From Leidyana gryllorum EB-2025a (lineage: Eukaryota; Protista; Apicomplexa), in NCBI GenBank assembly GCA_048772705.1, contig JBLWGC010000230.1, positions 620,001 through 684,000 of the forward strand: a stretch of DNA of 64,000 nt. The letters run 5' to 3'. This document shows, piece by piece, positions 4,328 through 55,161 of the stretch. Position 1 is the stretch's first letter. The number at the start of each line of letters is the position of its first letter. A program made the translations under genes and the position numbers. Below the pieces are notes generated by a model. That model did no database searches, was not told the DNA's origin, and saw only the letters and a list, made by a program, of their open reading frames with translations.

Positions 4328-4328
<1 letters not shown>

Positions 4329-4384
<56 letters not shown>
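4329..4384. repeat. (CA)n microsatellite
   Basis: Uninterrupted CA run of about 28 units. Confidence 0.97.
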
Positions 4385-4388
<4 letters not shown>

Positions 4389-6686: not shown

Positions 6687-7157
6687 TTCCAGTCCGGTAG
6701 CCCACTTTCACAATCACCATTGACCAGTATCCCATTTTCAATGATACGGAACAATGTCTTACTACTTCTGCACAATGTCACCAAACTTTATCGCGTCTCC
6801 CCAAACGTGTGTTAGGCTTGACACACATCGCAAGTTATTGTCAGTGTGCGCAACAGACCACACTGACACGTTTCATAGCTGAATCAAACTCCTTAGCCCA
6901 CCCGACTCGTGGAAGGGAGCGGACAGACTTTTTTTGTCCAGGGATTACTGGCAGCAAAGCGTCAGCTGCACTGTAAGAAGATTGGAAGAACGTCATTCCA
7001 TACGGTGCGTGCGGGGCCAGCGGGCGGGCGAGCGAGAGGACGGAGCATTTGGATCTGGCAAAGCTCCTACTCTCAGAAACCGGCTGAACGAGTGCTAAGG
7101 CAGACTACTAAAGCCGTCTTCCGTTGACCTGCTGTGAAATTTTGGAGTCGGAAGAGG

Positions 7158-8927
7158 ATGGCGTGCAGAGTGAGACCACACAGAAGGGCGAGAGCTACTT
7201 CAACCGAGCGCATGTGGCCTTTAAGACTGCTTGCAAGCGACATTCTCAAGGCTTTGACTGTCCAATCGCTTGACCGTCCGGACTTTGTCACAGCCTTGCA
7301 GACCCAACTCCACCCTCTCTCCCAATGGATTCATCTCTTAACTTCCCCGTGCGCACAAAGGCCCCTCAAATGGAGGGTGGAAGAGGCTGTGCCGTGCATC
7401 ACAACCACCGAGACGGAAAGATTTGAAAAAGGCGACTTATTTGAACAAGCGACGCCGGGGGCTGCCCTCATCCACATCCATGGGGTTCCCGATGTGTATG
7501 CGGAATCAGTTATCCGGATAACCGCGACCAGCCAGAAGCTATGGGACACCCGTGGCCGTTGTGTTGAATTGCCCTCTCTGCCGCAGCGTTTCGTCAATGA
7601 CATCTCTTGGACCGCTGCATGGGGGTCGCGTCTGACCAGACGATTGCATTTAGACTCTGTTGCTCAACGCGCTAGTTTCCTGTTGGAGTCCCTCCCATCC
7701 ATTCCTCCGAGTGCCACGATACGAATGAGGTGTGGGCCGAATTCACCGGCGTGCTTTGAGGTGATACAGCCGGGTGCGCCAAGAGATGTCGAGGTGTATT
7801 GGGTGGTTGAAGAACCGCTGGTGGGTGGAGACCAGTTTTGCTTTGTTCTCTACCGCCAAAGACGGAGTGGGGAGGTTGTCCTTCATCGACGAGGGGGCGC
7901 GGCTGGCGTCCGCACAGAGGTACTTTGCGCCCGACGCAATAATCACACCGACGCTTTGCGGTGTGCCCGCGCTTACGGAGAGTACTACAGGTGTTGGAAT
8001 GCGTTCCTGGATCAGCGCGCGTTGGCTGCTGCTGCTGCTGAGACCGCCGACTCCGAGGCTGGTGATTCAGTAAGCCATGACGATTTCAATTTCGTCAACA
8101 ATACTGATGTGTGTGCTTCTCGAGACGGGCCACACTCGGCTGAAGATTATGATGGGGATCAGACTCCCACCTGCCGACTAATTGATTGTCATCGTCCCGC
8201 GGGGGTGCTGGAACGCAATCCGGAAATTTTATCTCTGATGTCGGCGAACGGATGGTTGAGTCGTCCATGTTACTTTGATCGGTACACTTCTGAGATTATG
8301 GGGGTGTACTGTGGCGGCGTGGGGACATTCGCTCTGATCGATAGACCGACGGAGGATGCTCCCTATTTTCTGATCGGCGCCATACCAGAGAAGCCAATTC
8401 AAGCTGCAGACACCGCTTCGGTAAACCACCCATGCCGATTGGTTGCTATGCAGCGTCTGGTTGGCACCAACTATCTGACGGTAATCCGTTCCGACGAGGA
8501 GGGGACGTTGACGGACAACAATCCTTTCCCCACGTTCTTTCAAGACATGAAATTAACTCCGAAAGTTGCCATCTGGTGGGTGAGTCAGCTCGATCGACGA
8601 ACGAAGGAGAAGCTCAAGTTGAATGATGAAGTGGGAGCGACGCGTCTGTGGCATTGTGTGTATTTGGAATCGGGCGCAAAAGTCGCCTATGCTAAAGCCA
8701 TCAGGCGAGACAACGGAATGTATTCCTACTATGTCGCCAATTGCAGAGATCAGTCCAGTCTCGCTGCGGCCATCAAATACGCTAATAAAAACGGCCGTTG
8801 GAAGTCGACGGACCACTGTCCTGAGGATTTCTCCCCGGACTTCAGCGTCGAGCAACATGTCACTCAGCCTCTTAAGCTGGAGGCTAATGAAATTGATCTG
8901 CCTCAAGCCGAAGCTCACCAATTCTAA
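7158..8927 (+). CDS. Uncharacterised family protein, paralog 2 (divergent)
   Basis: Long ORF whose C-terminal half has MQRLVGTNYLTVI, NPFPTFF, TPKVAIWW and LWHCV, matching the family C-terminal domain. ANGWL is shared with the 12198 gene. Confidence 0.75.
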   Translation: MACRVRPHRRARATSTERMWPLRLLASDILKALTVQSLDRPDFVTALQTQLHPLSQWIHLLTSPCAQRPLKWRVEEAVPCITTTETERFEKGDLFEQATPGAALIHIHGVPDVYAESVIRITATSQKLWDTRGRCVELPSLPQRFVNDISWTAAWGSRLTRRLHLDSVAQRASFLLESLPSIPPSATIRMRCGPNSPACFEVIQPGAPRDVEVYWVVEEPLVGGDQFCFVLYRQRRSGEVVLHRRGGAAGVRTEVLCARRNNHTDALRCARAYGEYYRCWNAFLDQRALAAAAAETADSEAGDSVSHDDFNFVNNTDVCASRDGPHSAEDYDGDQTPTCRLIDCHRPAGVLERNPEILSLMSANGWLSRPCYFDRYTSEIMGVYCGGVGTFALIDRPTEDAPYFLIGAIPEKPIQAADTASVNHPCRLVAMQRLVGTNYLTVIRSDEEGTLTDNNPFPTFFQDMKLTPKVAIWWVSQLDRRTKEKLKLNDEVGATRLWHCVYLESGAKVAYAKAIRRDNGMYSYYVANCRDQSSLAAAIKYANKNGRWKSTDHCPEDFSPDFSVEQHVTQPLKLEANEIDLPQAEAHQF

Positions 8928-9536
8928 TCTTCAACTCTCAGCCATTTTTTTGTAATGTCAGGTATCTTGGGCCGAATACCATCAACTTTAATCGCTCACG
9001 GCATGAACCAAATTCCCTGGTTGTGCAATGAGTTGGCAGCCGTTTCGCCATTGCAAATGATCCTATATGGCACTTGGCGCCCTCTGTCGATCACAAGTCC
9101 TCAGCCATCGAGTTATCCCAACCAGGGTGGTCTTCCTTCGCATCTGAGTGCCATCTGTTTTGCCTTTGATGGAGCAGTAATGTGCCCTTGTCAACTGCAC
9201 AATCGTAGTCTGCCTCGCGAAGCCGCGACGAGACACCAACACAGAGCCGTAGCCGTCTCTTTGTGACTCAGTATAGAAGCTTTGGGAATAACGGGTGGCG
9301 ATTTGCGGTGTTTGCGTGCTAGTCGGGCCGGAACACCAGATCAGTGTGGAACATGTGTTTCCAGCTCATGTTTGAGGTCACAGGGGGGCTTGCGCGGGAA
9401 ACTGGCTAAGTGTGGGGATTGCATCTCATTGTCGTCTATGATGGCCATTTGATTCGTTAAACCGCAGTACGACAGGAGCCCTTAGGGTCACACAGACTTG
9501 GGATATCAACCTCACTTTTTTTGACTATCTTATTGT

Positions 9537-10443
9537 TAACATCTAAAATTGGTGACCGGCTGCACTAGCTGCTCGTCCTCCTCCAACTCGACGGAGGCGG
9601 TCAGATCATCGATGAGCTCCGTGCCCGGCTTAGTCTTAGTCCATCACCCACCATTTGGTCAATTCGGTCCAGTTGATCAGTGCCGAGCACACACGTGTGT
9701 TCGGACGCCGGCCTCTCCGTGTCAGCCGGCATCAAATCACCACATGCAAAATATTATACAACGAAGATGCAAAAAGGGGGTTTACTAAACTAGGGTTGTG
9801 ATACTCTACCATTCAATGTCACACAAGGGTTTGACGACCTTTTTACCTGGATAAAGGCCGGCTCATACGGAGACACCGGTTTACAAACACGCGCGTGTGC
9901 TCGGCAAGAATAGATCTAACTTGCTTCAGGTTGAGCTATGGAGAGTAACGGATTGAGGCCCAAGGTGGCTTTGGTAGAGTTGGAAGACGGAAGACAGGAC
10001 ATTCAGCCTATGATTCCGGTCACAGATGAGCCAAAAAATCATGTTGTGTGACACTACCAGCAGTAGGAGCGACATTTCAAAGACCTGAAAAATAGCTCAT
10101 GGACACTGAATTAAGCAGGTGATTCGTCAAACCCCTGTGTGACACGGAGTGTTAGGGTACTGTAACCCTAGATTAGTGAACCCCCTTTTGCATCTTTTAT
10201 TTGTTTATATTTTATGTGTGGTGATCTATATGACGATTGGGGCCGGCTGACACGGAGACACCGGCATCCAAACACACGCGTGCTCGGCACAAACTGAACT
10301 GGTTGGATTAATCAAACTACGTGATGGCGAAGGACGGATTAAGGAGCAAGGCGGCAAGCAACCAGGAGGAAGATCAAAACCCTACGGTCGACCTTACGGC
10401 AGTTCCGAATGCTGATCGGCCTACAGAACCGATCACGAATTAG
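9537..10443. repeat. Three-copy repeat unit (conserved upstream element plus micro-ORF); copy A inverted relative to B and C
   Basis: 9680-9837 is an imperfect reverse complement of 10124-10290. 9856-9906 is a direct copy of 10241-10290. Each copy is followed by an ATG and a (D/N)GLR-encoding stretch. Confidence 0.85.
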
Positions 10444-10614
10444 CAGGCTAGCCGCAGTAAAGCACCTTCCGGGGAGACACACTTTTTACCAAACAGATCA
10501 AACTAACAAAAACCAGCCGACGTTCACACCTACGCTCGACCCACTCAGACAAGACACAAGACAGTAACAGTTCACAGATCAACGAATTAGCAGAAGAAGG
10601 AAATTTCGGAAGAG

Positions 10615-12177
10615 ATGAGAGCTCCGTATTTTGGTCACAAGCCATACACCTCAGCTTCGCGGCTGAGGTTGACTCAAAGCATCGCGGGAGTCCTCTTCAC
10701 CCATGAGTCTCTAAGTGCTGCCGACCTGATCAGTCCTCAGGTTGTACAGGCGGTGAGAGAGCGGTGTGTGAAGTCGCCGTCTAGTTGGCCAGTGCTTCCA
10801 CCAGCCACTTGGCGAGACCATCCTGCTTTACACGGTCGGGTCCATGTCACCTTGGCAACCGAGCCGTTGTCTCGTTGTACCATTGAAACCGACCCGATGT
10901 TGCACACCGAACCCCACAAGGTCCGCTTTGAAGGGCCCCAGAGATTCTTTTGTCCCCTTAATGTGGATATTCTCGGCCTGGAAGAGCCAGGTGCCCAACA
11001 TCCGGAGGCTTACGCTCGAGGCGCGTTGGCCACGAGTGACGATGGGTGGAGAGTACAGTTGTGGTGTAACACATCACAAGTGAACCAGGAGACATATTCG
11101 ATCTCGTGGGACACTTGGTGGCGTGGATTTGACAGGTTGATCCCCGCCGTCAGTTACTTTTTGAAGAATGCACCACAGAAGTGGGGGTTCTCAAAGTCGG
11201 CCGTCATTGAGGCACGCACTTTAGACGCGTTCCAAAATGTACAAATTACTGTCAGACAGGAAGAGACGACGGAGGAGAGGACTCGAACATTTGCTGTTTG
11301 TTTCGGAGGTGTGGAGAGTTTGGGGTCGCTTCAGTATCCGCAAGAAATCCAGCTGTTGGCAACACATTCGAAGGTCATCGACGCAAACTCCTCTTCTGCT
11401 CCAGGCGGATCGTCGACGGCATCTGTGCCGAGTAGCGAAGCCCCAGAGAACGAGTCAACGAGCCCTCCTGTGGCTAGAAGGGTCGAGAACGGGGCGGATG
11501 GAGGGGCTCTACACTCGTCTACGAGGTCGAATCCAATGATCGAAGAGATGGAACGCAAATGGCCGGAACTGCACTCCCTCTTAACGGCTGTGGGTGCTTT
11601 CGATCAGCAATCCGGGGCCGACATTATGCAGACGGGGTACACTGTACGGAACATGAGACAAGTGGACAACAAGTTTCGCTTGGTTCACAACAACAGAGGT
11701 GAAATGATACTGTTGTTGGGCCCCGACAAAGCTTCGGTCGATGTCGTCATTGCATTACAGCGCATCGGCAATGTTAACTATCTCACCGGTTTGCCCGTCT
11801 CCGATGGGAAATGGTGTTGGGAGCTGAACCCGTTCCCCGAGTACTTTCGGCAAAACACAGAAGTGTCTCCGAAGAGCGCTGTATGGTGGGAAGAGCGACA
11901 GATGGACCGAAGCGAACCCAAACGCTATCACTGTGTGATGGTGGAAAGCGAAGAGGTGATCAAAAGTGTCGTCGCGACCGAGTTGAGAGTGAATGGTGCA
12001 TCGTACTTTCCCCCTGAATTCCAATTCGAGCTGAAGACTTGGGCTCCAGGAATGGAGTTGGCCGATGTCATTACTCGTCTCAATCCGACGCCCCAGCGGC
12101 CTCCGAGAGTCAGAGGCCCGTTGTGGGAGGAATTACAGCAGCTGCGGTTGCTGCATGGGGCCAAGCCGACAGAGTGA
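10615..12177 (+). CDS. Uncharacterised family protein, paralog 3 (520 aa)
   Basis: Collinear motif matches along its whole length to 5049-6686. Confidence 0.8.
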   Translation: MRAPYFGHKPYTSASRLRLTQSIAGVLFTHESLSAADLISPQVVQAVRERCVKSPSSWPVLPPATWRDHPALHGRVHVTLATEPLSRCTIETDPMLHTEPHKVRFEGPQRFFCPLNVDILGLEEPGAQHPEAYARGALATSDDGWRVQLWCNTSQVNQETYSISWDTWWRGFDRLIPAVSYFLKNAPQKWGFSKSAVIEARTLDAFQNVQITVRQEETTEERTRTFAVCFGGVESLGSLQYPQEIQLLATHSKVIDANSSSAPGGSSTASVPSSEAPENESTSPPVARRVENGADGGALHSSTRSNPMIEEMERKWPELHSLLTAVGAFDQQSGADIMQTGYTVRNMRQVDNKFRLVHNNRGEMILLLGPDKASVDVVIALQRIGNVNYLTGLPVSDGKWCWELNPFPEYFRQNTEVSPKSAVWWEERQMDRSEPKRYHCVMVESEEVIKSVVATELRVNGASYFPPEFQFELKTWAPGMELADVITRLNPTPQRPPRVRGPLWEELQQLRLLHGAKPTE

Positions 12178-12998
12178 GATTCCTAAATGAATATTTGATG
12201 GACTTGAGTGAATGGGAATGGAGCACAGTCCCAATGCCAACAGTGTGCGGGCCGAATTGGGGGGCCCCGGAGGTCTGTCTGGAGTGGTCGTCTCCCGATG
12301 CACCCTGCCGTCCTGAGAATCGGCGGCTGTCGACGGGTCTGCGACGGCTCCTGAAAGCCAACGGGTGGTTGCGGGACTCTTGCGTGCACACTGCCAGAAG
12401 CGCTGTGGACGTTGTGAAAGTGAGGGGGGTTGACAGAGTGGTGCAGCTCAAGGGGCATCCGTTCTCGGGTATTGAGGCCTTTGGCATCTGTAGGGGAAGA
12501 AGTGAGGGTCCGCAGCCGGAGCGAAGGATGCTGACGGTCCAAAATGTGGATGGAGTTGAGTATCTCAGAGTCATTGACCCTAACGACGCATCTCAGTGGT
12601 TCCTGCACCCAGACGATCCCCTCGTACGCCACTTCAGTGGGAGAAGAGGAGAATACAAAACTGTTCTGTATTGGAAGGAGCCAGTGGGCGCAGAAGGGGA
12701 AGGATCTCGAGATCACCACGAGTTCCACGCAATCGCCCAGACCACCGGCTGGCAAATGGAGTATTACAAAGCGGTTCGGGACTCACATTTTGATTCCTGG
12801 CGGGTATTACAATGGCCTTCTCAGTTGAGAGGGGAGAGTGTCGCACAAGTGCTGGCCGAAGCACAAGCTGAGCCACAACGATTCACAGAAGTCCGCACGC
12901 ATCCGGGCGAACGCTCCGTTTCTCGCTCACACGCTGAGGAAGACATGGAGTGGCCATCATCATCACACGTGGACCGCCGCACACGCCCAGATAGTCAT

Positions 12999-13177
12999 TG
13001 AGCCGTGTGAATGGCTCACGTTAACCTCCGAGGCTGCGGGGGTTCCTATAGGCTTACTCAACATAGGCGTGTCGCTCATTAGTTATCAACTAGCTCTGAT
13101 CTATTTACAAAAGACTAAAAGGATGTCGGCGACATAACATTGCCTTCGCGTTTTGCCTCACTGCGCCTGACCGCTCA
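12999..13177 (-). repeat. 3' LTR of copy 1
   Basis: 179 bp with TGAGC...GCTCA termini, adjacent to the PPT. Confidence 0.97.
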
Positions 13178-13179
13178 GC

Positions 13180-13188
13180 TCCCCTCCC
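13180..13188 (-). promoter_or_regulatory. Polypurine tract, copy 1
   Basis: GGGAGGGGA on the minus strand, 2 nt before the 3' LTR. Confidence 0.85.
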
Positions 13189-13198
13189 GCCGCGTCCC

Positions 13199-16100
13199 TC
13201 AATCGATTACCACTCTAGAGGGCGCGCGGCGCTTCTTAGCGGGCGGGCCGTCCGCCGTGGGTCGTAGCGGATCTTCCACCCGCGCTCGCCCCTGCAAGAC
13301 GACATCCTCCACAGTAACGTCCTTGGGCCAGCCCCGATTCAAAGGCCTCTCTCGTAGCCACTGCCCTTCGTTCTTCTCCACGTGGTCGACGGTAAGTTGG
13401 AAGAGTGACCCGGGGATAGCAGCGGGCAGTGGGGTAAGCTTCCGGAGCGCTACTGTACGCAGCTCCTCGGCCCGGCCCAGGTGCGCCACTGTGGCACTAC
13501 CGTCCCGGACTCGCACCACGCGACACGGCAGGGAGTGGCGGAAGCTAGACGACGTGGGGCCGTGGAGATCTGCTTGCAGCATAGCGTCTCGGGCTTCCTT
13601 GGACGCCTCGGTCAGGACCCAGTCACCTACTGTTATCGCCTTGGCGGGTTGCGCCTCCAGCGCCCGCGTTCGCTGCGCCAGCACCCACCCTACGTACCCT
13701 TGCAACCGGTGGGCGCGCTGTTGCGCGACTCTAGCCTCGTTGTTGTCTTGTCGCAGCGCCTGCCAACCGGCGATCGCCGGCTCGAACCCCATCAACATGT
13801 AGAACGGCGACCGCGCCGTAGCTACATGGGGCGTGGCGTTATAGGCCATCACTAGCGACGCGACCAGAGTCTCCAGCGGCTCCGCGGTGCCCTCGGCTAC
13901 CAGAGCGTCAACGCCCCGCTTGAGAAACTCGTGCGAGGCCTCGTTGATCCCGTTGCCTTGCGGGTAATGAGCCGTGGTGAAGTAGTGGGTACACCCCATT
14001 TCGATGTCCACAAGCTCGCGAAAGGCAGCCCCCTGGAACACCGATCCTCTGTCGGTAAGTATCGCGGTAGGGACCTGGAAGGTATAGAGCCACTTCTCCC
14101 GGAGGGCCTTGGCCACGCTCTTGGCCGTTGGGGGCTCCCACAGTACCTCCACTACCATGAATCGCGAGTAATGATCCACGATCACCACCCACCAGTAAGC
14201 TTCCCCTTTCCATCGTCTCGGCCCGACGAGGTCGATACTGACTATCTCGCACGGCCACGGCTTAGTCAACATGCCCACGAGGGCCCGCTTCGTCGGCTTA
14301 CGGAGTCGCTGACACACGATGCACGCCCTGACATACTCTGCGGCCTGCTCGGACATCCCTGGCCAGTAGACCCACTGCCGCATAAGCCTCAGCATCCGGT
14401 TTACCGCCACGTGCATCCCGGCCTTCCCGCAGTGGAACCAGTATAAGAGGGTCTCTCGCCAGTCTGGTGGAATCCACAGCTTCGTACTCCCTATTTTGTA
14501 ATACAGGCCTTCCGGCCCTTTTCTTATCAGATTCTCCTCTCCCGGAGGGATCGATTTAGACGCCTCTCGTAACTGAGGGATCGACGGGAGCAACGGGGGT
14601 GGCCAGATCTGCGCGACTGCCTCAGCCTCGAAGAGCGGCACGCAATACTCTTCCATATCTATCCCGCCTTCGTCATCTGCTGGGTGCCGCGACAAGTAAT
14701 CGGCCACGACGTTGTCCTCCCCTTCTAGGTAGATGAACTCCAAGTCGTACTGCTGTAAGAACAGCGACCAGCGCAGGAACTTGCCATCCTGCATCGCGTT
14801 GAAATACTTCAGCGCGGCATGGTCCGTAATTACGAAGGTCTTGCGGGTGCGGATGTAGTCGTGGAACTTCTTTACAGCCCACACCACTGCGAATGCTTCC
14901 TGTTCCGACGTGCTCCACCTGGTCTCCGCGTCAGTCAACTTCTTACTAGCATATTCCAGGGTCACCAGCGTCCCCTCCTGGGCTTGCATCAGCACCGCCC
15001 CGACCCCTTTCTTACAGGCATCCGTGTTAATCACGAACAGCCCAGGGCCCTTAGGATAGGCCAGTAAGGCCGCTTCGGCGATTCCCTTCTTAACTAGCGC
15101 GAACGCTCGTTGCTGCTCGGGACCCCACTCGAAGGGGTGACTCTGCTTGGTGAGAGACGTCAGTGGCTCCGCGATCGTGCTGTAATCCTGCACGAACTTT
15201 CTCAAGTAGCTACTCATCCCCAAGAACTCCCGTAGCTCTCTCAAATTCGTGGGTGCAGGTGCGTTTACGATCCCCTGCACCTTCTTCGGACTCGGCCTGA
15301 TGCCTTCCCGACTTACTCTAAACCCTAGCATGTTGACCTCTCGCCTGTACAGCTCCGTCTTCTTGAGCTTGAAGAAGAACCCTGCTTCCCTCGCCGCCGC
15401 CAGTACCTCTCGCAGCGTCGCGTCGTGTTCCTCCTTCGTGTCACCCCAAATGGTGATATCGTCAATGTACCTCGTCGCGCAACGGACGGAACCGAAGGCT
15501 AGATCTAACGCGCGTTGACACTCGCTCGGAGAATTACGCACTCCGAACGGGAGCACCGTGTACTCGTAAGTGCCAGCGTGGGTGATCATCGCGGTGTACG
15601 GCATACTCCCCTCCTCTAGCCTTACGTTCCAGAAACCGTTGGCGCAATCTAGAGCCGAGTACCACTCGTGCCCGGCTGCCAATTGGCACAGGTCCCACAC
15701 GTGAGGCAGGGGGTACGCGTCCGGTACCATCTGCGCGTTGAGAGGGCGGTAATCTACTACAATCCGCCACTCCCCAGTCTTCTTCTTTACAAATAAGGGG
15801 CTTGCACCCCACGGGCTCTTACTCGGCCTGATTACACCAGCCTTGAGCATACTCTGGAGTTGCTTATCCAACTCCTCCTTCAACTCCGCGGTCAGCGGTC
15901 TCAACCTTGCCCTATACGGCTTCCCGTAAACCTCGAAGCTGGCGGTGCTGACCTTAACTCGCCCCGGCACCGGGTCCAGCCAGGCATCTTTATACTCCCA
16001 CCAGATGTCCCACAGCTCAGAGACCCTCTCCGGACTCAAGTGACTCGTGATCGCATGAAACGTAGCTCGAGCCTCGGCTTTCTTTTCTTCGTCGGTAGCC

Positions 16101-17830
16101 CCTATCTCGTAGCCTGTAACGACGTCTTTAGCCGCATTGGCTCGCTTCTCTTCCTCCGTAAGCTCAACCATCAGCGCCTCGACCCTCCTAGGCAGTAACT
16201 GGCCCTCGAGAGGGTCCAGCAACAGCCCGCTGGTCTTCAACGCGTCCATACCTACTAGTAACTGGTCATGATGCGTCTCGACTACCCAAAACGATTGCTC
16301 AAAGCCAACCCCTCCAATCTCCAACTTTACAGGTTCGAGCTTCCGGCCCCTCGCGGTACCCAGCCCGGCGAAGTTTACCGTATCACCGGTAGCCCTTAAC
16401 CCGAACTTCTTACGCAACGAAGGCCCGCAGACACTGAAAGCCGCTCCTGTGTCGACTATCGCCTCGAACTCTACTCCGTTGATCTTTACGGGCATCCGGA
16501 AAGCCTTTCCGAACCCGTTCGGCGAGCAGCGATACACCTCTCTCTCGCCAAGGTAATCTTTGAGCAGGCGGCAGGTCTCCTCGAGGACTCCTTCATCGTC
16601 GGTCTCGCTCGACGAGTCCTCGGCCTCGCACACCTTGGCGTCCGCTTTCTCCTCTTCCGCTGCTTTCTTCTTGGCGGCCTCCTTGAGCTCTCGGTAATGC
16701 TTCGCTTTACGCTCTCTAACTTTCGCTGCTCGACTTCGCAAGATCTCCAACAGCTCTTCCGCGCTTACGATCTTCTCTTCGGCTGAATACGGCTCCTTAG
16801 ACTGAAGCACGTGACCTGCCCGGGTCTCCATTACACGAAGCTTGATCCTCTGCGACTTCGGATCGCGCTTTACTAGCGCCCTACACGTGGTCGCGGCGTG
16901 ACCTTTCTTGTCGCAATGCTCGCACTTTTTCTCCTTGTACTCGCAGTCCTTCGAGTGGTGACCCTTCAACCCACACCTGAAGCAGGGAGGCTTCTCCACC
17001 TCCTTCTTGGGGGTATCGGCCGGCGCCTTGGGCGGCTCCGCCGTTTTCTCTTCCATCGACTCATCAGTCGCCGGAGGCTCTGCCGTAAACAGCGGGACAC
17101 CCGTCCGCGCTCTCTTCTTAGCACACTCAGCTTCGGCGAACTCAGCCCCGTCCATTAAGGCCGTGAGCGAGTCGAGGTTGGGCATATAGCTTAATCTCTC
17201 GAGCACATCGAGGGGTAAACTTCTCTTGAAGAGCATCCGCAACCTTCCCTCGGTGAGCAGGGAGTCGTGTTGGCGACGGTCTCTCACTCGGACGAATCTC
17301 CTGCAGACCGAACGCATCCACGCCACCGCATCCGGCACTGTCCCCGCTCTCTTTCCCGCAGCGATCTCTAACTCGAGCTCCTCTACGTAGTCGGAGTGGC
17401 GGAAGTGTCTCTTCGCCACTCTCTCGACCATCTCCTCGTACTGGAGTCCCGCCGGTAGGCTACGGAGGGTTGCCGCTACATTCGGCGTTGCCACCAGAGC
17501 CCAGGCATCTCTGAAGAGTTCGGAGCAGAGTCCGAATCTCTTGATTTGCGCCGCCGCTGCGTCGACCCAGTCTTCGAACGCTCTCTCGTTGGGCGGGTCG
17601 AATGGAGCGAGGTTGAGGAAGTTGAGGAACTTGGCTCTCCGATTGAGCTGTTCCACCACGTCGTCCTCATGTGGTTCTCGGGGGAACCTCTCGTCGTTAG
17701 CTAGGAACTCCAACAGCACAGCCTCGTGGTTCCCAGAACAGCCCCCAGCTGAGCCGTGTGAATGGCTCACGTTAACCTCCGAGGCTGCGGGGGTTCCTAT
17801 AGGCTTACTCAACATAGGCGTGTCGCTCAT
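13199..17830 (-). CDS. Gag-Pol polyprotein (1543 aa), copy 1
   Basis: Two CCHC knuckles (CFRCGLKGHHSKDC, CEHCDKKGHAATTC), protease IVDTGA, RT LPFG and YIDD, RNase H NTDAC, integrase H-x6-H...CIVC and D,D,E (SIDLVG, LTDRG, NGINE). The RT-RH-IN order is that of Ty3/Gypsy. Confidence 0.98.
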   Translation of the reverse strand: MSDTPMLSKPIGTPAASEVNVSHSHGSAGGCSGNHEAVLLEFLANDERFPREPHEDDVVEQLNRRAKFLNFLNLAPFDPPNERAFEDWVDAAAAQIKRFGLCSELFRDAWALVATPNVAATLRSLPAGLQYEEMVERVAKRHFRHSDYVEELELEIAAGKRAGTVPDAVAWMRSVCRRFVRVRDRRQHDSLLTEGRLRMLFKRSLPLDVLERLSYMPNLDSLTALMDGAEFAEAECAKKRARTGVPLFTAEPPATDESMEEKTAEPPKAPADTPKKEVEKPPCFRCGLKGHHSKDCEYKEKKCEHCDKKGHAATTCRALVKRDPKSQRIKLRVMETRAGHVLQSKEPYSAEEKIVSAEELLEILRSRAAKVRERKAKHYRELKEAAKKKAAEEEKADAKVCEAEDSSSETDDEGVLEETCRLLKDYLGEREVYRCSPNGFGKAFRMPVKINGVEFEAIVDTGAAFSVCGPSLRKKFGLRATGDTVNFAGLGTARGRKLEPVKLEIGGVGFEQSFWVVETHHDQLLVGMDALKTSGLLLDPLEGQLLPRRVEALMVELTEEEKRANAAKDVVTGYEIGATDEEKKAEARATFHAITSHLSPERVSELWDIWWEYKDAWLDPVPGRVKVSTASFEVYGKPYRARLRPLTAELKEELDKQLQSMLKAGVIRPSKSPWGASPLFVKKKTGEWRIVVDYRPLNAQMVPDAYPLPHVWDLCQLAAGHEWYSALDCANGFWNVRLEEGSMPYTAMITHAGTYEYTVLPFGVRNSPSECQRALDLAFGSVRCATRYIDDITIWGDTKEEHDATLREVLAAAREAGFFFKLKKTELYRREVNMLGFRVSREGIRPSPKKVQGIVNAPAPTNLRELREFLGMSSYLRKFVQDYSTIAEPLTSLTKQSHPFEWGPEQQRAFALVKKGIAEAALLAYPKGPGLFVINTDACKKGVGAVLMQAQEGTLVTLEYASKKLTDAETRWSTSEQEAFAVVWAVKKFHDYIRTRKTFVITDHAALKYFNAMQDGKFLRWSLFLQQYDLEFIYLEGEDNVVADYLSRHPADDEGGIDMEEYCVPLFEAEAVAQIWPPPLLPSIPQLREASKSIPPGEENLIRKGPEGLYYKIGSTKLWIPPDWRETLLYWFHCGKAGMHVAVNRMLRLMRQWVYWPGMSEQAAEYVRACIVCQRLRKPTKRALVGMLTKPWPCEIVSIDLVGPRRWKGEAYWWVVIVDHYSRFMVVEVLWEPPTAKSVAKALREKWLYTFQVPTAILTDRGSVFQGAAFRELVDIEMGCTHYFTTAHYPQGNGINEASHEFLKRGVDALVAEGTAEPLETLVASLVMAYNATPHVATARSPFYMLMGFEPAIAGWQALRQDNNEARVAQQRAHRLQGYVGWVLAQRTRALEAQPAKAITVGDWVLTEASKEARDAMLQADLHGPTSSSFRHSLPCRVVRVRDGSATVAHLGRAEELRTVALRKLTPLPAAIPGSLFQLTVDHVEKNEGQWLRERPLNRGWPKDVTVEDVVLQGRARVEDPLRPTADGPPAKKRRAPSRVVID
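17730..17747 (-). promoter_or_regulatory. Primer-binding site, tRNA-Pro type, copy 1
   Basis: TGGGGGCTGTTCTGGGAA lies 2 nt after the 5' LTR, is complementary to a tRNA 3' end ...UUCCCAGAACAGCCC-CCA, and resembles the canonical PBS-Pro TGGGGGCTCGTCCGGGAT. Confidence 0.8.
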
Positions 17831-17928
17831 TAGTTATCAACTAGCTCTGATCTATTTACAAAAGACTAAAAGGATGTCGGCGACATAACATTGCCTTCGC
17901 GTTTTGCCTCACTGCGCCTGACCGCTCA
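17750..17928 (-). repeat. 5' LTR of copy 1
   Basis: Identical to the other LTRs; contains the gag ATG at 17830. Confidence 0.97.
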
Positions 17929-18240
17929 GTCATTCAAGAGCGCCCGAGACGATGGTCGTTGAGAACGGGCGGTCATTACCACCATCACGCCGGCGACTTC
18001 TTCGTGAAAGAACGGACAGGCCTCGGATGCCCGTACGGACACCTCCACCACCACCACCACCAAGATGGGGGATCCTGACATCACGCCTGCGAGGCACACA
18101 CACCTCACGGCCCGACGGCGAGCAATTGAGGAGCCCTCGTCGTGAAACTGAGGGAGGCGGGTGGGTATCATTACCACGGCGATCACGCGACGCAATCCTC
18201 GCAAACATCCCGGGTGACGCGTGGCGAGCAGTTGTACAAG

Positions 18241-18419
18241 TGAGCCGTGTGAATGGCTCACGTTAACCTCCGAGGCTGCGGGGGTTCCTATAGGCTTACT
18301 CAACATAGGCGTGTCGCTCATTAGTTATCAACTAGCTCTGATCTATTTACAAAAGACTAAAAGGATGTCGGCGACATAACATTGCCTTCGCGTTTTGCCT
18401 CACTGCGCCTGACCGCTCA
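18241..18419 (-). repeat. 3' LTR of copy 2
   Basis: 179-bp LTR, with PPT at 18422-18430. Confidence 0.97.
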
Positions 18420-18440
18420 GCTCCCCTCCCGCCGCGTCCC

Positions 18441-21400
18441 TCAATCGATTACCACTCTAGAGGGCGCGCGGCGCTTCTTAGCGGGCGGGCCGTCCGCCGT
18501 GGGTCGTAGCGGATCTTCCACCCGCGCTCGCCCCTGCAAGACGACATCCTCCACAGTAACGTCCTTGGGCCAGCCCCGATTCAAAGGCCTCTCTCGTAGC
18601 CACTGCCCTTCGTTCTTCTCCACGTGGTCGACGGTAAGTTGGAAGAGTGACCCGGGGATAGCAGCGGGCAGTGGGGTAAGCTTCCGGAGCGCTACTGTAC
18701 GCAGCTCCTCGGCCCGGCCCAGGTGCGCCACTGTGGCACTACCGTCCCGGACTCGCACCACGCGACACGGCAGGGAGTGGCGGAAGCTAGACGACGTGGG
18801 GCCGTGGAGATCTGCTTGCAGCATAGCGTCTCGGGCTTCCTTGGACGCCTCGGTCAGGACCCAGTCACCTACTGTTATCGCCTTGGCGGGTTGCGCCTCC
18901 AGCGCCCGCGTTCGCTGCGCCAGCACCCACCCTACGTACCCTTGCAACCGGTGGGCGCGCTGTTGCGCGACTCTAGCCTCGTTGTTGTCTTGTCGCAGCG
19001 CCTGCCAACCGGCGATCGCCGGCTCGAACCCCATCAACATGTAGAACGGCGACCGCGCCGTAGCTACATGGGGCGTGGCGTTATAGGCCATCACTAGCGA
19101 CGCGACCAGAGTCTCCAGCGGCTCCGCGGTGCCCTCGGCTACCAGAGCGTCAACGCCCCGCTTGAGAAACTCGTGCGAGGCCTCGTTGATCCCGTTGCCT
19201 TGCGGGTAATGAGCCGTGGTGAAGTAGTGGGTACACCCCATTTCGATGTCCACAAGCTCGCGAAAGGCAGCCCCCTGGAACACCGATCCTCTGTCGGTAA
19301 GTATCGCGGTAGGGACCTGGAAGGTATAGAGCCACTTCTCCCGGAGGGCCTTGGCCACGCTCTTGGCCGTTGGGGGCTCCCACAGTACCTCCACTACCAT
19401 GAATCGCGAGTAATGATCCACGATCACCACCCACCAGTAAGCTTCCCCTTTCCATCGTCTCGGCCCGACGAGGTCGATACTGACTATCTCGCACGGCCAC
19501 GGCTTAGTCAACATGCCCACGAGGGCCCGCTTCGTCGGCTTACGGAGTCGCTGACACACGATGCACGCCCTGACATACTCTGCGGCCTGCTCGGACATCC
19601 CTGGCCAGTAGACCCACTGCCGCATAAGCCTCAGCATCCGGTTTACCGCCACGTGCATCCCGGCCTTCCCGCAGTGGAACCAGTATAAGAGGGTCTCTCG
19701 CCAGTCTGGTGGAATCCACAGCTTCGTACTCCCTATTTTGTAATACAGGCCTTCCGGCCCTTTTCTTATCAGATTCTCCTCTCCCGGAGGGATCGATTTA
19801 GACGCCTCTCGTAACTGAGGGATCGACGGGAGCAACGGGGGTGGCCAGATCTGCGCGACTGCCTCAGCCTCGAAGAGCGGCACGCAATACTCTTCCATAT
19901 CTATCCCGCCTTCGTCATCTGCTGGGTGCCGCGACAAGTAATCGGCCACGACGTTGTCCTCCCCTTCTAGGTAGATGAACTCCAAGTCGTACTGCTGTAA
20001 GAACAGCGACCAGCGCAGGAACTTGCCATCCTGCATCGCGTTGAAATACTTCAGCGCGGCATGGTCCGTAATTACGAAGGTCTTGCGGGTGCGGATGTAG
20101 TCGTGGAACTTCTTTACAGCCCACACCACTGCGAATGCTTCCTGTTCCGACGTGCTCCACCTGGTCTCCGCGTCAGTCAACTTCTTACTAGCATATTCCA
20201 GGGTCACCAGCGTCCCCTCTTGGGCTTGCATCAGCACCGCCCCGACCCCTTTCTTACAGGCATCCGTGTTAATCACGAACAGCCCAGGGCCCTTAGGATA
20301 GGCCAGTAAGGCCGCTTCGGCGATTCCCTTCTTAACTAGCGCGAACGCTCGTTGCTGCTCGGGACCCCACTCGAAGGGGTGACTCTGCTTGGTGAGAGAC
20401 GTCAGTGGCTCCGCGATCGTGCTGTAATCCTGCACGAACTTTCTCAAGTAGCTACTCATCCCCAAGAACTCCCGTAGCTCTCTCAAATTCGTGGGTGCAG
20501 GTGCGTTTACGATCCCCTGCACCTTCTTCGGACTCGGCCTGATGCCTTCCCGACTTACTCTAAACCCTAGCATGTTGACCTCTCGCCTGTACAGCTCCGT
20601 CTTCTTGAGCTTGAAGAAGAACCCTGCTTCCCTCGCCGCCGCCAGTACCTCTCGCAGCGTCGCGTCGTGTTCCTCCTTCGTGTCACCCCAAATGGTGATA
20701 TCGTCAATGTACCTCGTCGCGCAACGGACGGAACCGAAGGCTAGATCTAACGCGCGTTGACACTCGCTCGGAGAATTACGCACTCCGAACGGGAGCACCG
20801 TGTACTCGTAAGTGCCAGCGTGGGTGATCATCGCGGTGTACGGCATACTCCCCTCCTCTAGCCTTACGTTCCAGAAACCGTTGGCGCAATCTAGAGCCGA
20901 GTACCACTCGTGCCCGGCTGCCAATTGGCACAGGTCCCACACGTGAGGCAGGGGGTACGCGTCCGGTACCATCTGCGCGTTGAGAGGGCGGTAATCTACT
21001 ACAATCCGCCACTCCCCAGTCTTCTTCTTTACAAATAAGGGGCTTGCACCCCACGGGCTCTTACTCGGCCTGATTACACCAGCCTTGAGCATACTCTGGA
21101 GTTGCTTATCCAACTCCTCCTTCAACTCCGCGGTCAGCGGTCTCAACCTTGCCCTATACGGCTTCCCGTAAACCTCGAAGCTGGCGGTGCTGACCTTAAC
21201 TCGCCCCGGCACCGGGTCCAGCCAGGCATCTTTATACTCCCACCAGATGTCCCACAGCTCAGAGACCCTCTCCGGACTCAAGTGACTCGTGATCGCATGA
21301 AACGTAGCTCGAGCCTCGGCTTTCTTTTCTTCGTCGGTAGCCCCTATCTCGTAGCCTGTAACGACGTCTTTAGCCGCATTGGCTCGCTTCTCTTCCTCCG

Positions 21401-23072
21401 TAAGCTCAACCATCAGCGCCTCGACCCTCCTAGGCAGTAACTGGCCCTCGAGAGGGTCCAGCAACAGCCCGCTGGTCTTCAACGCGTCCATACCTACTAG
21501 TAACTGGTCATGATGCGTCTCGACTACCCAAAACGATTGCTCAAAGCCAACCCCTCCAATCTCCAACTTTACAGGTTCGAGCTTCCGGCCCCTCGCGGTA
21601 CCCAGCCCGGCGAAGTTTACCGTATCACCGGTAGCCCTTAACCCGAACTTCTTACGCAACGAAGGCCCGCAGACACTGAAAGCCGCTCCTGTGTCGACTA
21701 TCGCCTCGAACTCTACTCCGTTGATCTTTACGGGCATCCGGAAAGCCTTTCCGAACCCGTTCGGCGAGCAGCGATACACCTCTCTCTCGCCAAGGTAATC
21801 TTTGAGCAGGCGGCAGGTCTCCTCGAGGACTCCTTCATCGTCGGTCTCGCTCGACGAGTCCTCGGCCTCGCACACCTTGGCGTCCGCTTTCTCCTCTTCC
21901 GCTGCTTTCTTCTTGGCGGCCTCCTTGAGCTCTCGGTAATGCTTCGCTTTACGCTCTCTAACTTTCGCTGCTCGACTTCGCAAGATCTCCAACAGCTCTT
22001 CCGCGCTTACGATCTTCTCTTCGGCTGAATACGGCTCCTTAGACTGAAGCACGTGACCTGCCCGGGTCTCCATTACACGAAGCTTGATCCTCTGCGACTT
22101 CGGATCGCGCTTTACTAGCGCCCTACACGTGGTCGCGGCGTGACCTTTCTTGTCGCAATGCTCGCACTTTTTCTCCTTGTACTCGCAGTCCTTCGAGTGG
22201 TGACCCTTCAACCCACACCTGAAGCAGGGAGGCTTCTCCACCTCCTTCTTGGGGGTATCGGCCGGCGCCTTGGGCGGCTCCGCCGTTTTCTCTTCCATCG
22301 ACTCATCAGTCGCCGGAGGCTCTGCCGTAAACAGCGGGACACCCGTCCGCGCTCTCTTCTTAGCACACTCAGCTTCGGCGAACTCAGCCCCGTCCATTAA
22401 GGCCGTGAGCGAGTCGAGGTTGGGCATATAGCTTAATCTCTCGAGCACATCGAGGGGTAAACTTCTCTTGAAGAGCATCCGCAACCTTCCCTCGGTGAGC
22501 AGGGAGTCGTGTTGGCGACGGTCTCTCACTCGGACGAATCTCCTGCAGACCGAACGCATCCACGCCACCGCATCCGGCACTGTCCCCGCTCTCTTTCCCG
22601 CAGCGATCTCTAACTCGAGCTCCTCTACGTAGTCGGAGTGGCGGAAGTGTCTCTTCGCCACTCTCTCGACCATCTCCTCGTACTGGAGTCCCGCCGGTAG
22701 GCTACGGAGGGTTGCCGCTACATTCGGCGTTGCCACCAGAGCCCAGGCATCTCTGAAGAGTTCGGAGCAGAGTCCGAATCTCTTGATTTGCGCCGCCGCT
22801 GCGTCGACCCAGTCTTCGAACGCTCTCTCGTTGGGCGGGTCGAATGGAGCGAGGTTGAGGAAGTTGAGGAACTTGGCTCTCCGATTGAGCTGTTCCACCA
22901 CGTCGTCCTCATGTGGTTCTCGGGGGAACCTCTCGTCGTTAGCTAGGAACTCCAACAGCACAGCCTCGTGGTTCCCAGAACAGCCCCCAGCTGAGCCGTG
23001 TGAATGGCTCACGTTAACCTCCGAGGCTGCGGGGGTTCCTATAGGCTTACTCAACATAGGCGTGTCGCTCAT
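18441..23072 (-). CDS. Gag-Pol polyprotein (1543 aa), copy 2
   Basis: Translation in the ORF track is the same as copy 1. Confidence 0.98.
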   Translation of the reverse strand: MSDTPMLSKPIGTPAASEVNVSHSHGSAGGCSGNHEAVLLEFLANDERFPREPHEDDVVEQLNRRAKFLNFLNLAPFDPPNERAFEDWVDAAAAQIKRFGLCSELFRDAWALVATPNVAATLRSLPAGLQYEEMVERVAKRHFRHSDYVEELELEIAAGKRAGTVPDAVAWMRSVCRRFVRVRDRRQHDSLLTEGRLRMLFKRSLPLDVLERLSYMPNLDSLTALMDGAEFAEAECAKKRARTGVPLFTAEPPATDESMEEKTAEPPKAPADTPKKEVEKPPCFRCGLKGHHSKDCEYKEKKCEHCDKKGHAATTCRALVKRDPKSQRIKLRVMETRAGHVLQSKEPYSAEEKIVSAEELLEILRSRAAKVRERKAKHYRELKEAAKKKAAEEEKADAKVCEAEDSSSETDDEGVLEETCRLLKDYLGEREVYRCSPNGFGKAFRMPVKINGVEFEAIVDTGAAFSVCGPSLRKKFGLRATGDTVNFAGLGTARGRKLEPVKLEIGGVGFEQSFWVVETHHDQLLVGMDALKTSGLLLDPLEGQLLPRRVEALMVELTEEEKRANAAKDVVTGYEIGATDEEKKAEARATFHAITSHLSPERVSELWDIWWEYKDAWLDPVPGRVKVSTASFEVYGKPYRARLRPLTAELKEELDKQLQSMLKAGVIRPSKSPWGASPLFVKKKTGEWRIVVDYRPLNAQMVPDAYPLPHVWDLCQLAAGHEWYSALDCANGFWNVRLEEGSMPYTAMITHAGTYEYTVLPFGVRNSPSECQRALDLAFGSVRCATRYIDDITIWGDTKEEHDATLREVLAAAREAGFFFKLKKTELYRREVNMLGFRVSREGIRPSPKKVQGIVNAPAPTNLRELREFLGMSSYLRKFVQDYSTIAEPLTSLTKQSHPFEWGPEQQRAFALVKKGIAEAALLAYPKGPGLFVINTDACKKGVGAVLMQAQEGTLVTLEYASKKLTDAETRWSTSEQEAFAVVWAVKKFHDYIRTRKTFVITDHAALKYFNAMQDGKFLRWSLFLQQYDLEFIYLEGEDNVVADYLSRHPADDEGGIDMEEYCVPLFEAEAVAQIWPPPLLPSIPQLREASKSIPPGEENLIRKGPEGLYYKIGSTKLWIPPDWRETLLYWFHCGKAGMHVAVNRMLRLMRQWVYWPGMSEQAAEYVRACIVCQRLRKPTKRALVGMLTKPWPCEIVSIDLVGPRRWKGEAYWWVVIVDHYSRFMVVEVLWEPPTAKSVAKALREKWLYTFQVPTAILTDRGSVFQGAAFRELVDIEMGCTHYFTTAHYPQGNGINEASHEFLKRGVDALVAEGTAEPLETLVASLVMAYNATPHVATARSPFYMLMGFEPAIAGWQALRQDNNEARVAQQRAHRLQGYVGWVLAQRTRALEAQPAKAITVGDWVLTEASKEARDAMLQADLHGPTSSSFRHSLPCRVVRVRDGSATVAHLGRAEELRTVALRKLTPLPAAIPGSLFQLTVDHVEKNEGQWLRERPLNRGWPKDVTVEDVVLQGRARVEDPLRPTADGPPAKKRRAPSRVVID
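22972..22989 (-). promoter_or_regulatory. Primer-binding site, tRNA-Pro type, copy 2
   Basis: Same 18-mer as in copy 1. Confidence 0.8.
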
Positions 23073-23170
23073 TAGTTATCAACTAGCTCTGATCTATTTA
23101 CAAAAGACTAAAAGGATGTCGGCGACATAACATTGCCTTCGCGTTTTGCCTCACTGCGCCTGACCGCTCA
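22992..23170 (-). repeat. 5' LTR of copy 2
   Basis: 179-bp LTR containing the gag ATG at 23072. Confidence 0.97.
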
Positions 23171-24489
23171 ACAAGTGTCCGCGTTCTTTCCGACATCAAG
23201 ACCACCTCTAGGTCCCCCAGCGGCTTAGAACCGATGCCCATGCGACCGGTTGTCCTCCACGCCAACATTGCTGGGCAGTGTCCCACTCCACTATTCCGAC
23301 CCCTCCCGAATTACAGCTGGAAAAACTGATCTACTGGGATCAGCTTCTCCAGTGAGATGTCAAGCCATGCACCACCCTACTTAAGCTCAGTTAGGCAGTA
23401 TGTCTCCTGCTCAGCTCAGACCAGCCGACCGCCCAAGCGTCTTGAGATTTTTGAGATTAAGACTGTTTGTATTAGTTGTTTCGTGCTTCCTAAAACGAAC
23501 ACCGACCACCGACTTTCGCAGCTATCGCAGATTGTCTGACAGATCGATATCGCACACAATCTAAATTCAGAAGCCTCCTGCGATGGGCGCTGTCAAAGCT
23601 GGGAGGTACAATTCTATGATCCAACGAAGCTTTCGAGATTATGCAATTCACTCTCATCGATATCTGTTGACTGCCTCCTCAAATAGCGAGCGATTTTGAG
23701 GGGAAATACTGGACTGGGAGAGATGGCTGGTTCGGCGCCACCGTCGGTAGAGAAGCCTTCAGTAGCACCTGTGACTGTGACGAGCCAATTAGACGATCTG
23801 GTCCCTGCGTAAGTTGGGTGCCCTATTCCTCGAACAATTGGGATTGATGGCGGAGGAATCCAGCCCCCTTTTGTATCGCCCTCCCTCTTTTGCAAGTTCC
23901 CATCCGACATGATACACCACCACGAAGGACGACGCGAGTGAACATCAAACTTACTGATGGCTGTTCACAGCCCTGGGAGCAAAGCGAATGGGCCTCCCAA
24001 GGAGAACGCGGGTTCTCAATTGAGTTGGTGGAAGAATCAGAGGATGATCCAGCCGGTCACGAATCAATGATCTGCTCAAAGTATTGGAACATATGGTGTC
24101 TGTCAGCTGTACCAGTCGGGAAGGTCACTAACCTCATAACAGCGCACGCATAATGATTAAAGACCCCTTTTCCGTAGAGGACAGCGGGACGAATGACGCT
24201 ACACCACACTCCGCTCCCGCTCGGCGAGCCAGCGATCTGTACTAAGACACAGACACAGCCCAGGCGCATCGCCCATCGGGACGATGCCGCACACAAACCA
24301 TCAAAGACCAGATAGAATAATAGAGAGACAAATGACTACCTATGAATAAGCGTAGATGGCCTAACACACCTCCCAACGCTAATCCACCATTCCTGTGCTG
24401 ACCCGGTCGCAAGCCGAGGAAGTGACACTGCTTCAAGACGGCGGTAACATAAACCTTGACCCCTCCCAACACACTAACAACTTCAATCT

Positions 24490-26303: not shown

Positions 26304-28062
26304 TCACTTCTGACCATTGGTGTCGAGTGGTGTGGCAGATTGAAGGTCAGCTGTATCGGGCTTCTTCGATGTGTCCTCTGGTGGCTCGATCCTTGCGGCC
26401 GAGTCCTTAGGTGCTGGCGGAGCCGACTTCAGAGCAGTCCCATCACCAGCAGTTCTCTCCTCGGCTGCTGCCTCAGCTGTTATGGCCGCCGCTAACTTCA
26501 TTTGCAGTCCTTGCAGCTCCGGTTCGGGCTGCGGAGCCTTGAGGATCAGACTTGAGAAGGGAGCGATGTCCAGCCAGACGCAGTATGGCCAGCCAAGTCG
26601 TCCACCCTGCGTTGTCGGCACTTTGACTTGGTTTCCTGGACCCCTCATGGAACCTCCATACTTCCAGTCGTCAGAGTTCAACAACACAGACCACTTTCCG
26701 CCGTGGGGGACCCCAATGGGGAACTTCTGGTGGTATTTGGCACTAAAGTTGCAGACGGTCAGCACATCGTTGTTCCACACAACCCAATGTCTGAGCCATG
26801 CAATAACACAACTCTCGGCATTATCGCATTCCGTCCACTTGAAGTTCCACGCGTCGTCATCTCCAGCGTGAAGCGCGCCCTCTCTCTTATAGATTCCCAA
26901 CAAGTCCGCCACGTACTGCATGAATTTGGACCGCAAAGGTTCCGTTGACTCATGCCAGTCTACACTACGCGACTCCTTCCATTCCCGACCCTGAGCAAAC
27001 TCTGCGCCCATAAAGACCAAAGGACGGCCTCCGAGTCCGATCTGATAGGTAAAGAGGGACTTCATAGTGGCGATCCGCTCATCAAATGACGCTCCAGCAA
27101 AACTGCACTTGTCCAGTAGGCTTCCTTTGCCGCTCACCACTTCGTCGTGGCTTAATGGTAATACCCAATTCTCGTGTGCCATATATAAACCGCGGAAGGT
27201 CAACTTGCTGTGTTTCGTCGGACGCAAAGGAGTTGGAGTACACAAATACGCCAGAGTGTCATTCATCCAGCCCAAATCCCATTTTGCATCGAATCCCAAT
27301 CCATTCTTCTTATCTGTCACCCCCTTCCAACTCGTTGCCTCTTCAGCCATCGTGAAGACGCCCGGAAACTCTTTGTGAATCACCCAGTTAAGCTCTTGCA
27401 ACATATTTATCGCCTCCAAGTTGGCATCCCCACCAAACTCATTGGGCAACCAATCGCCCTCATCACGGCAGTAATTCTTGTATAACATAGACGAAACGGC
27501 GTCAATTCGTAATCCATCGATATGATATCGGCGTAACCAGTGATACGCCGCACCCAACAAAAATGAGCGGACTTCATTCCTCCGGAAGTTGAACACTGTA
27601 ATCACGATTCGCTGCACGCCACAAACACTGAACCTACCCATAGTGCCCCAAGTACGGTGCTCGCCTTCTCTGGGATCCGCATACTCAAAAACTGGCTCCC
27701 CGTCGTAATAAACCAGGCCCCAATCGTCCTGTGGACCCGAATGGTACGCCAGTAACGTAGCAGCAACAACTCACCTTAACAAAGTGGGCAGGTACAAAGT
27801 CCATGAATACTCCAATATCATTCTGATGTAAAACGTCGATGAGGTATTTCAGATCATCGGGGTTGCCTAGACGACTGTATGGCGCATAGAACCCCGACAC
27901 CTGGTAGCCCCAACTGCCTTCGAACGGATGGTGAGCTAGGGGCAAGAACTCGACGTGCGTGAAGTTCAGGTCTTTCAAATGCTTCACCAGCCGGTGTGCC
28001 AGCTCGCGGTAACCTGAAGTGCAGAAAGAACTATCTACATCCAGTCTTTCCAATCTACACTC

Positions 28063-55066: not shown

Positions 55067-55161
55067 GATTGAGATAATAGTTAGTCATAGTTAGTGCGGG
55101 TTGAAGAAGTTTGTGGGAGGTTGGAGGACTTTGCACCCTGATTGCCGGTGGTGTGCTAACG

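Follow-up and report, generated by a model that had tools for sequence, protein, structure and literature searches.

Two independent insertions of a young Ty3/Gypsy-order retrotransposon, 312 bp apart in one open reading frame of a eugregarine

Introduction

The Ty3 and Ty1 elements of Saccharomyces have insertion hot spots at genes transcribed by RNA polymerase III (Pol III), and two other long terminal repeat (LTR) elements, Tf1 of Schizosaccharomyces pombe and Tos17 of rice, have hot spots at the level of regions or genes. The gag frame of Ty1 starts within the 5' LTR and continues across the primer-binding site (PBS). Here we analyse a 64-kb stretch of a gregarine genome (positions 620,001 to 684,000 of contig JBLWGC010000230.1, assembly GCA_048772705.1, Leidyana gryllorum EB-2025a; hereafter the window) which contains two almost identical LTR retrotransposons, copies A and B, lying 312 bp apart within one open reading frame (ORF), the host frame. 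Apicomplexan genomes are poor in transposable elements, and most of the LTR elements reported there are fragmented (PMC9141347). An earlier reading of the window, made from the sequence only, had called intact LTR elements rare in most apicomplexans, which is fair, although Gypsy-like LTR elements had already been reported in both of the gregarine genomes studied, those of Ascogregarina taiwanensis and Gregarina niphandrodes (PMC9141347, citing Templeton et al. for A. taiwanensis).

The window contains a CHD1-type gene (38918-42211, minus strand) whose product is 82% identical to that of Gregarina sp. Poly, 78% identical to that of Blabericola migrator and 71% identical to that of Gregarina niphandrodes, and the host is therefore a eugregarine. 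We favour, with moderate confidence, the explanation that the pair represents two separate integrations of one very young, probably active, tRNA-Pro-primed family of Ty3/Gypsy order, and that the closeness of the two copies most likely comes from a regional effect.

Results

Two complete elements with different target-site duplications

A direct-repeat scan and base-by-base comparison of the window revealed two units of 4,930 bp, offset by 5,242 bp from start to start (Table 1). Their four 179-bp LTRs, which have TG...CA ends, are all identical. Each unit is flanked by a perfect 5-bp target-site duplication (TSD), and the two TSDs differ, i.e. GTCAT around copy A and ACAAG around copy B. Beyond the TSDs the sequence is dissimilar on all four sides, and the spacer between the copies occurs only once in the 15.5-Mb assembly. 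Both copies have the same orientation, with their polyproteins encoded on the minus strand, antisense to the plus-strand host frame. Alignment of the two copies over their full length gave a single difference (C at 14978 in copy A, T at 20220 in copy B), which is synonymous and affects the third position of Gln951 (CAG versus CAA). The copy B variant is also found in the C35 copy at another locus, and the copy A state is common to four other copies of the family.

Two independent integrations are well supported by this sequence arrangement, because the TSDs are distinct and perfect and the spacer is unique. The near identity of the copies, their common orientation and their offset would also be expected if a single element had been duplicated, segmentally or in tandem, or repeated by an assembly stutter. 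The TSDs and flanks rule out such an origin: a separate, perfect 5-bp TSD surrounds each copy, the outer and inner flanks are all without similarity beyond these, the spacer has no second occurrence, and the one difference between the copies is a variant that exists elsewhere in the genome. We consider the probability of a duplication or stutter to be practically nil. The sequence-only reading had described two complete elements with identical LTRs, separate TSDs, antisense orientation and one synonymous difference, and had argued against a tandem duplication; all of this was borne out.

Table 1. Coordinates of the two elements and the host frame in the window (position 1 is the first nucleotide of the window).
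Feature	Position	Strand	Details
Host orphan ORF, piece 1	12198-12998	plus	267 codons
TSD of copy A, left	12994-12998		GTCAT
Copy A, complete Ty3/Gypsy-order LTR retrotransposon	12999-17928	minus	4,930 bp
Copy A 3' LTR (element orientation)	12999-13177	minus	179 bp, TG...CA
Copy A polypurine tract	13179-13188	minus	GGGAGGGGAG, one base from 3' LTR
Copy A Gag-Pol ORF	13199-17830	minus	1,543 amino acids
Copy A site of A/B difference	14978		C (T at 20220 in copy B)
Copy A PBS	17731-17747	minus	17 nt, complementary to tRNA-Pro 3' end with CCA
Copy A 5' LTR	17750-17928	minus	
Spacer, i.e. host ORF piece 2	17929-18240	plus	312 bp; starts with TSD of copy A (17929-17933), ends with TSD of copy B (18236-18240)
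Copy B, complete element	18241-23170	minus	4,930 bp
Copy B LTRs	18241-18419 and 22992-23170		
Copy B polypurine tract	18421-18430		
Copy B Gag-Pol ORF	18441-23072	minus	1,543 amino acids
Copy B PBS	22973-22989		
TSD of copy B, right	23171-23175		ACAAG
Host ORF, piece 3	23176-23228	plus	last 16 codons and stop

Coding content and class of the elements

Each copy carries one uninterrupted frame of 1,543 codons on the minus strand, which encodes Gag, protease (PR), reverse transcriptase (RT), RNase H and integrase (INT) in that order. Pfam matches were obtained to PR (residues 447-532), RT (681-839), RNase H (902-1028), the INT zinc domain (1120-1177) and the INT core (1195-1290), so that INT follows RT, as is required of a Ty3/Gypsy element. 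In Gag, two CX2CX4HX4C (CCHC) knuckles are visible in the translation, with a Pfam zf-CCHC match that fell below the cut-off (E = 0.0035). The LTRs are direct repeats accompanied by a short TSD, and a PBS and a polypurine tract are both present, the PBS starting 2 nt past the 5' LTR in the orientation of the element and the polypurine tract lying immediately ahead of the 3' LTR with one base between. The complement of the PBS occurs ∼950 times in the genome, compared with 0-3 times for a control, and is located at the 3' end of tRNA-Pro genes; the PBS is therefore of the tRNA-Pro type. By these sequence features the elements are classed as conventional tRNA-Pro-primed LTR retrotransposons of Ty3/Gypsy order.

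The elements are very compact, 94% of their length being coding. The first ATG of the Gag-Pol frame lies inside the 5' LTR (LTR position 99) and the frame runs through the tRNA-Pro PBS, with the LTR-derived part at 17750-17830 in copy A and 22992-23072 in copy B, while the stop codon lies 21 nt ahead of the 3' LTR. Relatives of 1,537-1,538 amino acids on ∼5-kb contigs are equally compact. All 120 matches listed by the protein search have the Gypsy-type domain set, and those that bear a name are labelled Ty3/Gypsy. None of the matches is a near-identical public protein; the closest among those listed is 61% identical over RT-INT (on a 3.8-kb Logan contig), followed by others at 43-47%. The elements therefore represent a new family of Ty3/Gypsy elements. 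One relative of 5.1 kb (43% identity), with 182-bp LTRs that are 99% alike, lies within the stretch 4093-15660 of ENA ERZ25039552 contig_81505, where it abuts the LTR of another, inverted element; RT/INT fragments are found on either side of it, and LTR-like pieces are arrayed at 14.6-16.0 kb.

The more distant protein matches (28-34% identity) mostly carry a PF00385 chromodomain. In the last 253 residues of the polyprotein no PF00385 match was obtained even at E <= 10, and none was found in the close relatives. When the C-terminal 250 residues were aligned with the close clade, an SH3-like barrel was seen, followed by a short conserved tail that ends in a basic KRR motif. An AlphaFold model of the integrase C-terminus also shows an SH3-like barrel and a short tail, at low confidence (mean pLDDT 62.5).

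A very young family

Three queries were run against the whole 15.5-Mb assembly, i.e. the complete element, the LTR and 2 kb of internal sequence. They gave seven full-length copies (A, B, C35, C220, C2, C202 and C47, the last of which begins at a contig end), one fragment of 411 bp at the start of contig C7 and one solo LTR, along with two old LTR-like matches of 76-82% identity. The solo LTR (98% identity, TSD TTTGC) lies on the same contig as copies A and B, 222 kb upstream of them (C230:410204-410382). The contigs that carry the C47 copy (C47:1-4928) and the C7 fragment (C7:2-412) begin at or inside the element, and their flanks (TCGAA versus GCGCG) share no TSD; they are therefore counted as two loci.

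All 15 LTRs of the young copies are 100% identical. Among six of the seven full copies, pairwise differences (substitutions and 1-bp insertions) number 0-5 over 4.9 kb: copy B and the C35 copy do not differ at all, copy A is one site away from both, and C220 differs from copy A at two sites. Uninterrupted frames were found by direct translation in five of the seven (A, B, C35, C220 and C202). A 1-bp insertion breaks the frame in C2, and another is expected to do so in C47. TSDs of 5 bp are present at A, B, C35, C2 and the solo LTR, whereas the flanks match over just 4 bp at C220 and 3 bp at C202. The seventh copy (C202:54592-59521) has 14 differences from copy A, of which 12 lie within element positions 4163-4736. 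Because the differences are clustered and the flank match is a mere 3 bp, this copy looks like a mosaic, which may have arisen by recombination with a diverged subfamily or by exchange between two loci.

Across the seven LTR pairs (∼1,250 sites) there are no differences, which gives an upper bound of ∼0.24% on LTR-pair divergence (95%) and argues that the family is very young. The very recent transposition proposed in the sequence-only reading thus agrees with the identity of the LTRs, the uninterrupted ORFs and the presence of both PBS and polypurine tract. The identical LTRs and open frames suggest that the family is probably active at present.

The interrupted frame is an orphan of uncertain coding status

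When each element was excised in a script together with one TSD copy, a single open frame of 446 codons was restored, 386 of them counted from the first ATG at 12198. This frame spans both junctions, as the sequence-only reading had claimed for its 386-residue ORF, and no other long frame does so. Insertion A lies between codons 267 and 268 and insertion B inside codon 370; in its present state the host frame is cut to 267 codons by a TGA (12999-13001) formed by the first three bases of the LTR. The host ATG is placed 20 nt past the stop codon of the third member of a tandem array. This array consists of three orphan paralogues (5049-6686, 7134-8927 and 10615-12177, plus strand) with 25-32% amino acid identity and no Pfam domain, and it is directly upstream of the host ORF.

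We searched the host frame piece by piece, using pieces 1 and 2 for Pfam and piece 1 for homologues. Neither of the two pieces contains a Pfam domain. For piece 1, neither a genomic paralogue nor a word-search homologue was found, and there was no match at E <= 0.001 among 1.84 billion representative proteins and no usable neighbour in the ESM Atlas. Codon usage was scored against 13 long ORFs of the window, which served as the training set; the score was coding-like for codons 1-135 (0.086), weak for the second half of piece 1 (0.042) and not coding-like for the spacer piece (−0.148). Since the codon usage of the tail is not coding-like, the insertion sites may be non-coding. The host frame is lineage-specific and its coding status uncertain, and the sites may lie either in a tail that it can do without or, beyond the array, in DNA that does not code. 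The sequence-only reading had placed both hits in a low-complexity Arg/Pro tail and had taken a conserved domain to be left intact. The richness in Arg and Pro is real (R 21%, P 16%), although the codon usage of this tail does not resemble that of a coding region, and the conserved domain finds no counterpart in the searches described above, in which conservation of the frame was not detectable.

Features of the other insertion sites

Six copies have sequence on both flanks, and four of these interrupt long orphan frames: A and B, the C35 copy (frame of 699 codons) and the C220 copy (frame of 809 codons). A further orphan frame, of more than 458 codons, borders the C7 fragment. The ORFs interrupted by the other copies are unrelated to the host ORF and to one another. 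Gene-family targeting, which the sequence-only reading had offered as one possibility, is not supported, given the lack of a host paralogue and the mutual dissimilarity of the interrupted ORFs. No tRNA gene or Rfam RNA gene was found in the 64-kb window or, at the other loci, up to 5 kb away from the insertion point, and targeting of Pol III or small nuclear RNA genes in the manner of Ty3 or Ty1 was rejected on this ground.

Diverged local duplicates are present in the flanks of C2, C7 and the solo LTR, and the window site, the C2 copy and the solo LTR each have other repeat families no more than 2.5 kb away. In the stretch C35:241163-256092, 2.63-kb units with 95-98% identity form a tandem array, and the C35 copy is embedded in it, where it interrupts its 699-codon frame in sense orientation. 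The site pattern gives a lead, in that it fits insertion into, or survival in, fast-evolving dispensable regions.

Within the window a 324-bp repeat (10120-10443) has at least seven further genomic matches at 96% identity, and a copy of it is found at a distance of 2.4 kb from the C2 copy. The 324-bp repeat is inserted in a second repeat (10049-10118 and 10488-10581) that also occurs 55 bp from the solo LTR. It may belong to another family, either as a solo LTR or as a small non-autonomous element.

Is the closeness of the two copies more than chance?

We simulated uniform insertion into 15.5 Mb and recorded the distance between the closest pair, so that the resulting probability takes in all pairs of the element family genome-wide. 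The closest pair lay within 312 bp in 0.12%, 0.14% and 0.20% of cases for 8, 9 and 10 insertions, respectively; the sequence-only reading had noted that a high enough copy number would make two hits within 312 bp expected, and with 8-10 uniformly placed insertions they are not (P 0.0012-0.0020). Limiting the available or tolerated target to 10% of the genome raised the probability to 1.1-1.8%, and limiting it to ∼3% raised it to 3.7-5.9%. The uniform insertion model is rejected, but the pair would be nothing unusual if the target were moderately restricted.

Some regional bias or tolerance therefore seems likely. Three results weigh against it: at a target of ∼3% the probability is no longer small, no target-site motif is common to the seven sites, and one cluster among eight or nine loci, the rest being singletons, cannot establish a hot spot. 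Coincidence would mean that insertions fall practically at random wherever a compact genome tolerates them, and that two of the few survivors happen to be neighbours. In its favour, the sites share neither a target motif nor a genomic feature, and the P of 0.04-0.06 at ∼3% tolerated target concerns one cluster that was chosen as striking. The probabilities for the whole genome (0.0012-0.0020) and for a 10% target (0.011-0.018) oppose it, since they already cover all pairs of the family, and we consider coincidence unlikely.

A further explanation is that the first copy itself drew the second integration alongside, either through altered chromatin (silencing marks) or through a tether bound to it. 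The second integration would then lie beside a resident copy and not be nested in it, which is the arrangement observed; other repeat families are near several sites of the element family, and elements of the clade abut other elements in the 16-kb contig of a relative. The integrase C-terminus contains neither a chromodomain nor another known targeting domain by Pfam, by alignment or in the low-confidence model, and six or seven other loci hold one copy each. Attraction of this kind appears quite improbable to us.

Assembly and the cis arrangement

The two copies lie mid-way in a 1.73-Mb contig, and the assembly contains no alternative contig with the host ORF or the spacer. The contigs that start at or in the element (C47 and C7) show that the assembler did not resolve every copy; breaks exactly at the edge of the element could also reflect insertion polymorphism in the sequenced material. 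It is conceivable that two haplotypes or cells, each with one copy, were joined in cis by the assembly across the 312-bp spacer. The contig starts point in this direction, and insertions that interrupt genes would be expected to be polymorphic. The position of the locus in the middle of a 1.73-Mb contig implies long reads, for which a 312-bp overlap would be too short for a switch of path, and a second contig carrying the host ORF or spacer is missing. We therefore judge a merge of haplotypes to be rather improbable. Even if it had occurred, two independent hits 312 bp apart would stand, and just the cis arrangement would fall. Direct repeats of 4.9 kb that lie only 312 bp apart should recombine readily, which argues that the arrangement of A and B is recent.

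Other genes of the window

Two adjacent ORFs on the minus strand (26304-27641 and 28153-29304) encode parts of a glucan branching enzyme, the first its C-terminal and the second its N-terminal domains (alpha-amylase C, CBM48, GlgB N), and are presumably one gene split by an intron. Two further sets of paralogues are present, i.e. 44446-45651 and 62003-63253 (plus strand, 49% amino acid identity), and 55105-57174, 57388-59436 (plus strand) and 59649-61718 (minus strand), which are 22-24% identical. Lineage-specific duplicated genes seem to be common in this region.

Discussion

The explanation that we favour is that the two copies integrated separately and that their closeness is most likely a property of the region. 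Transcription of the element would start in the 5' LTR, and translation, beginning at the ATG in that LTR, would yield one Gag-Pol polyprotein. Reverse transcription would be primed by tRNA-Pro, and the integrase would insert the product, usually through a staggered cut of 5 bp. Both copies are inserted in the same orientation into the Arg/Pro-rich 3' end of an orphan frame behind the three-paralogue array, and copy A truncates this frame. Their closeness could result from an integration bias for this stretch, from relaxed selection on a dispensable stretch or from both; neither a gene family nor Pol III genes would be the target. The element itself is a conventional Ty3/Gypsy element, and a single neighbouring pair does not yet prove targeting.

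A bolder reading would be that the element is live and has a real hot spot, or that it is drawn near its own resident copies by a mechanism free of a chromodomain, for which the short conserved integrase tail of this clade is one candidate. This we regard as unlikely; if true, it would make the element the first demonstrably active, site-biased LTR retrotransposon of the apicomplexan lineage.

In the literature searched we found no report of a gregarine family of seven near-identical full copies with identical LTRs. Such a family, with open frames and in a genome of 15.5 Mb, is a good candidate for a currently mobile element. It offers a natural system for the dynamics between transposon and host in a compact parasite genome, and the double hit provides one locus to genotype for presence and absence alleles.

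The pair resembles Ty3 and Ty1 in the repeated independent hits within a few hundred bases and in the 5-bp TSD, and resembles Ty1 in the opening of gag inside the 5' LTR; it differs from them in that the window, like the 5-kb surroundings of the other insertion points, is free of tRNA and Rfam RNA genes, even though tRNA-Pro-like 3' ends number ∼950 genome-wide. As with Tf1 and Tos17, one family has hit a short region or gene more than once independently, with no strict motif at the sites; the hot spots of those elements rest on thousands of mapped insertions, whereas a single pair is available here. The chromoviruses of Eimeria, fungi and plants have the same domain order and LTR architecture as the elements described here. 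They carry an integrase chromodomain, which is not detectable in our elements or in their close clade. The Gypsy-like elements of the gregarines A. taiwanensis and G. niphandrodes share with the present family both the order of elements to which they belong and the group of hosts in which they are found.

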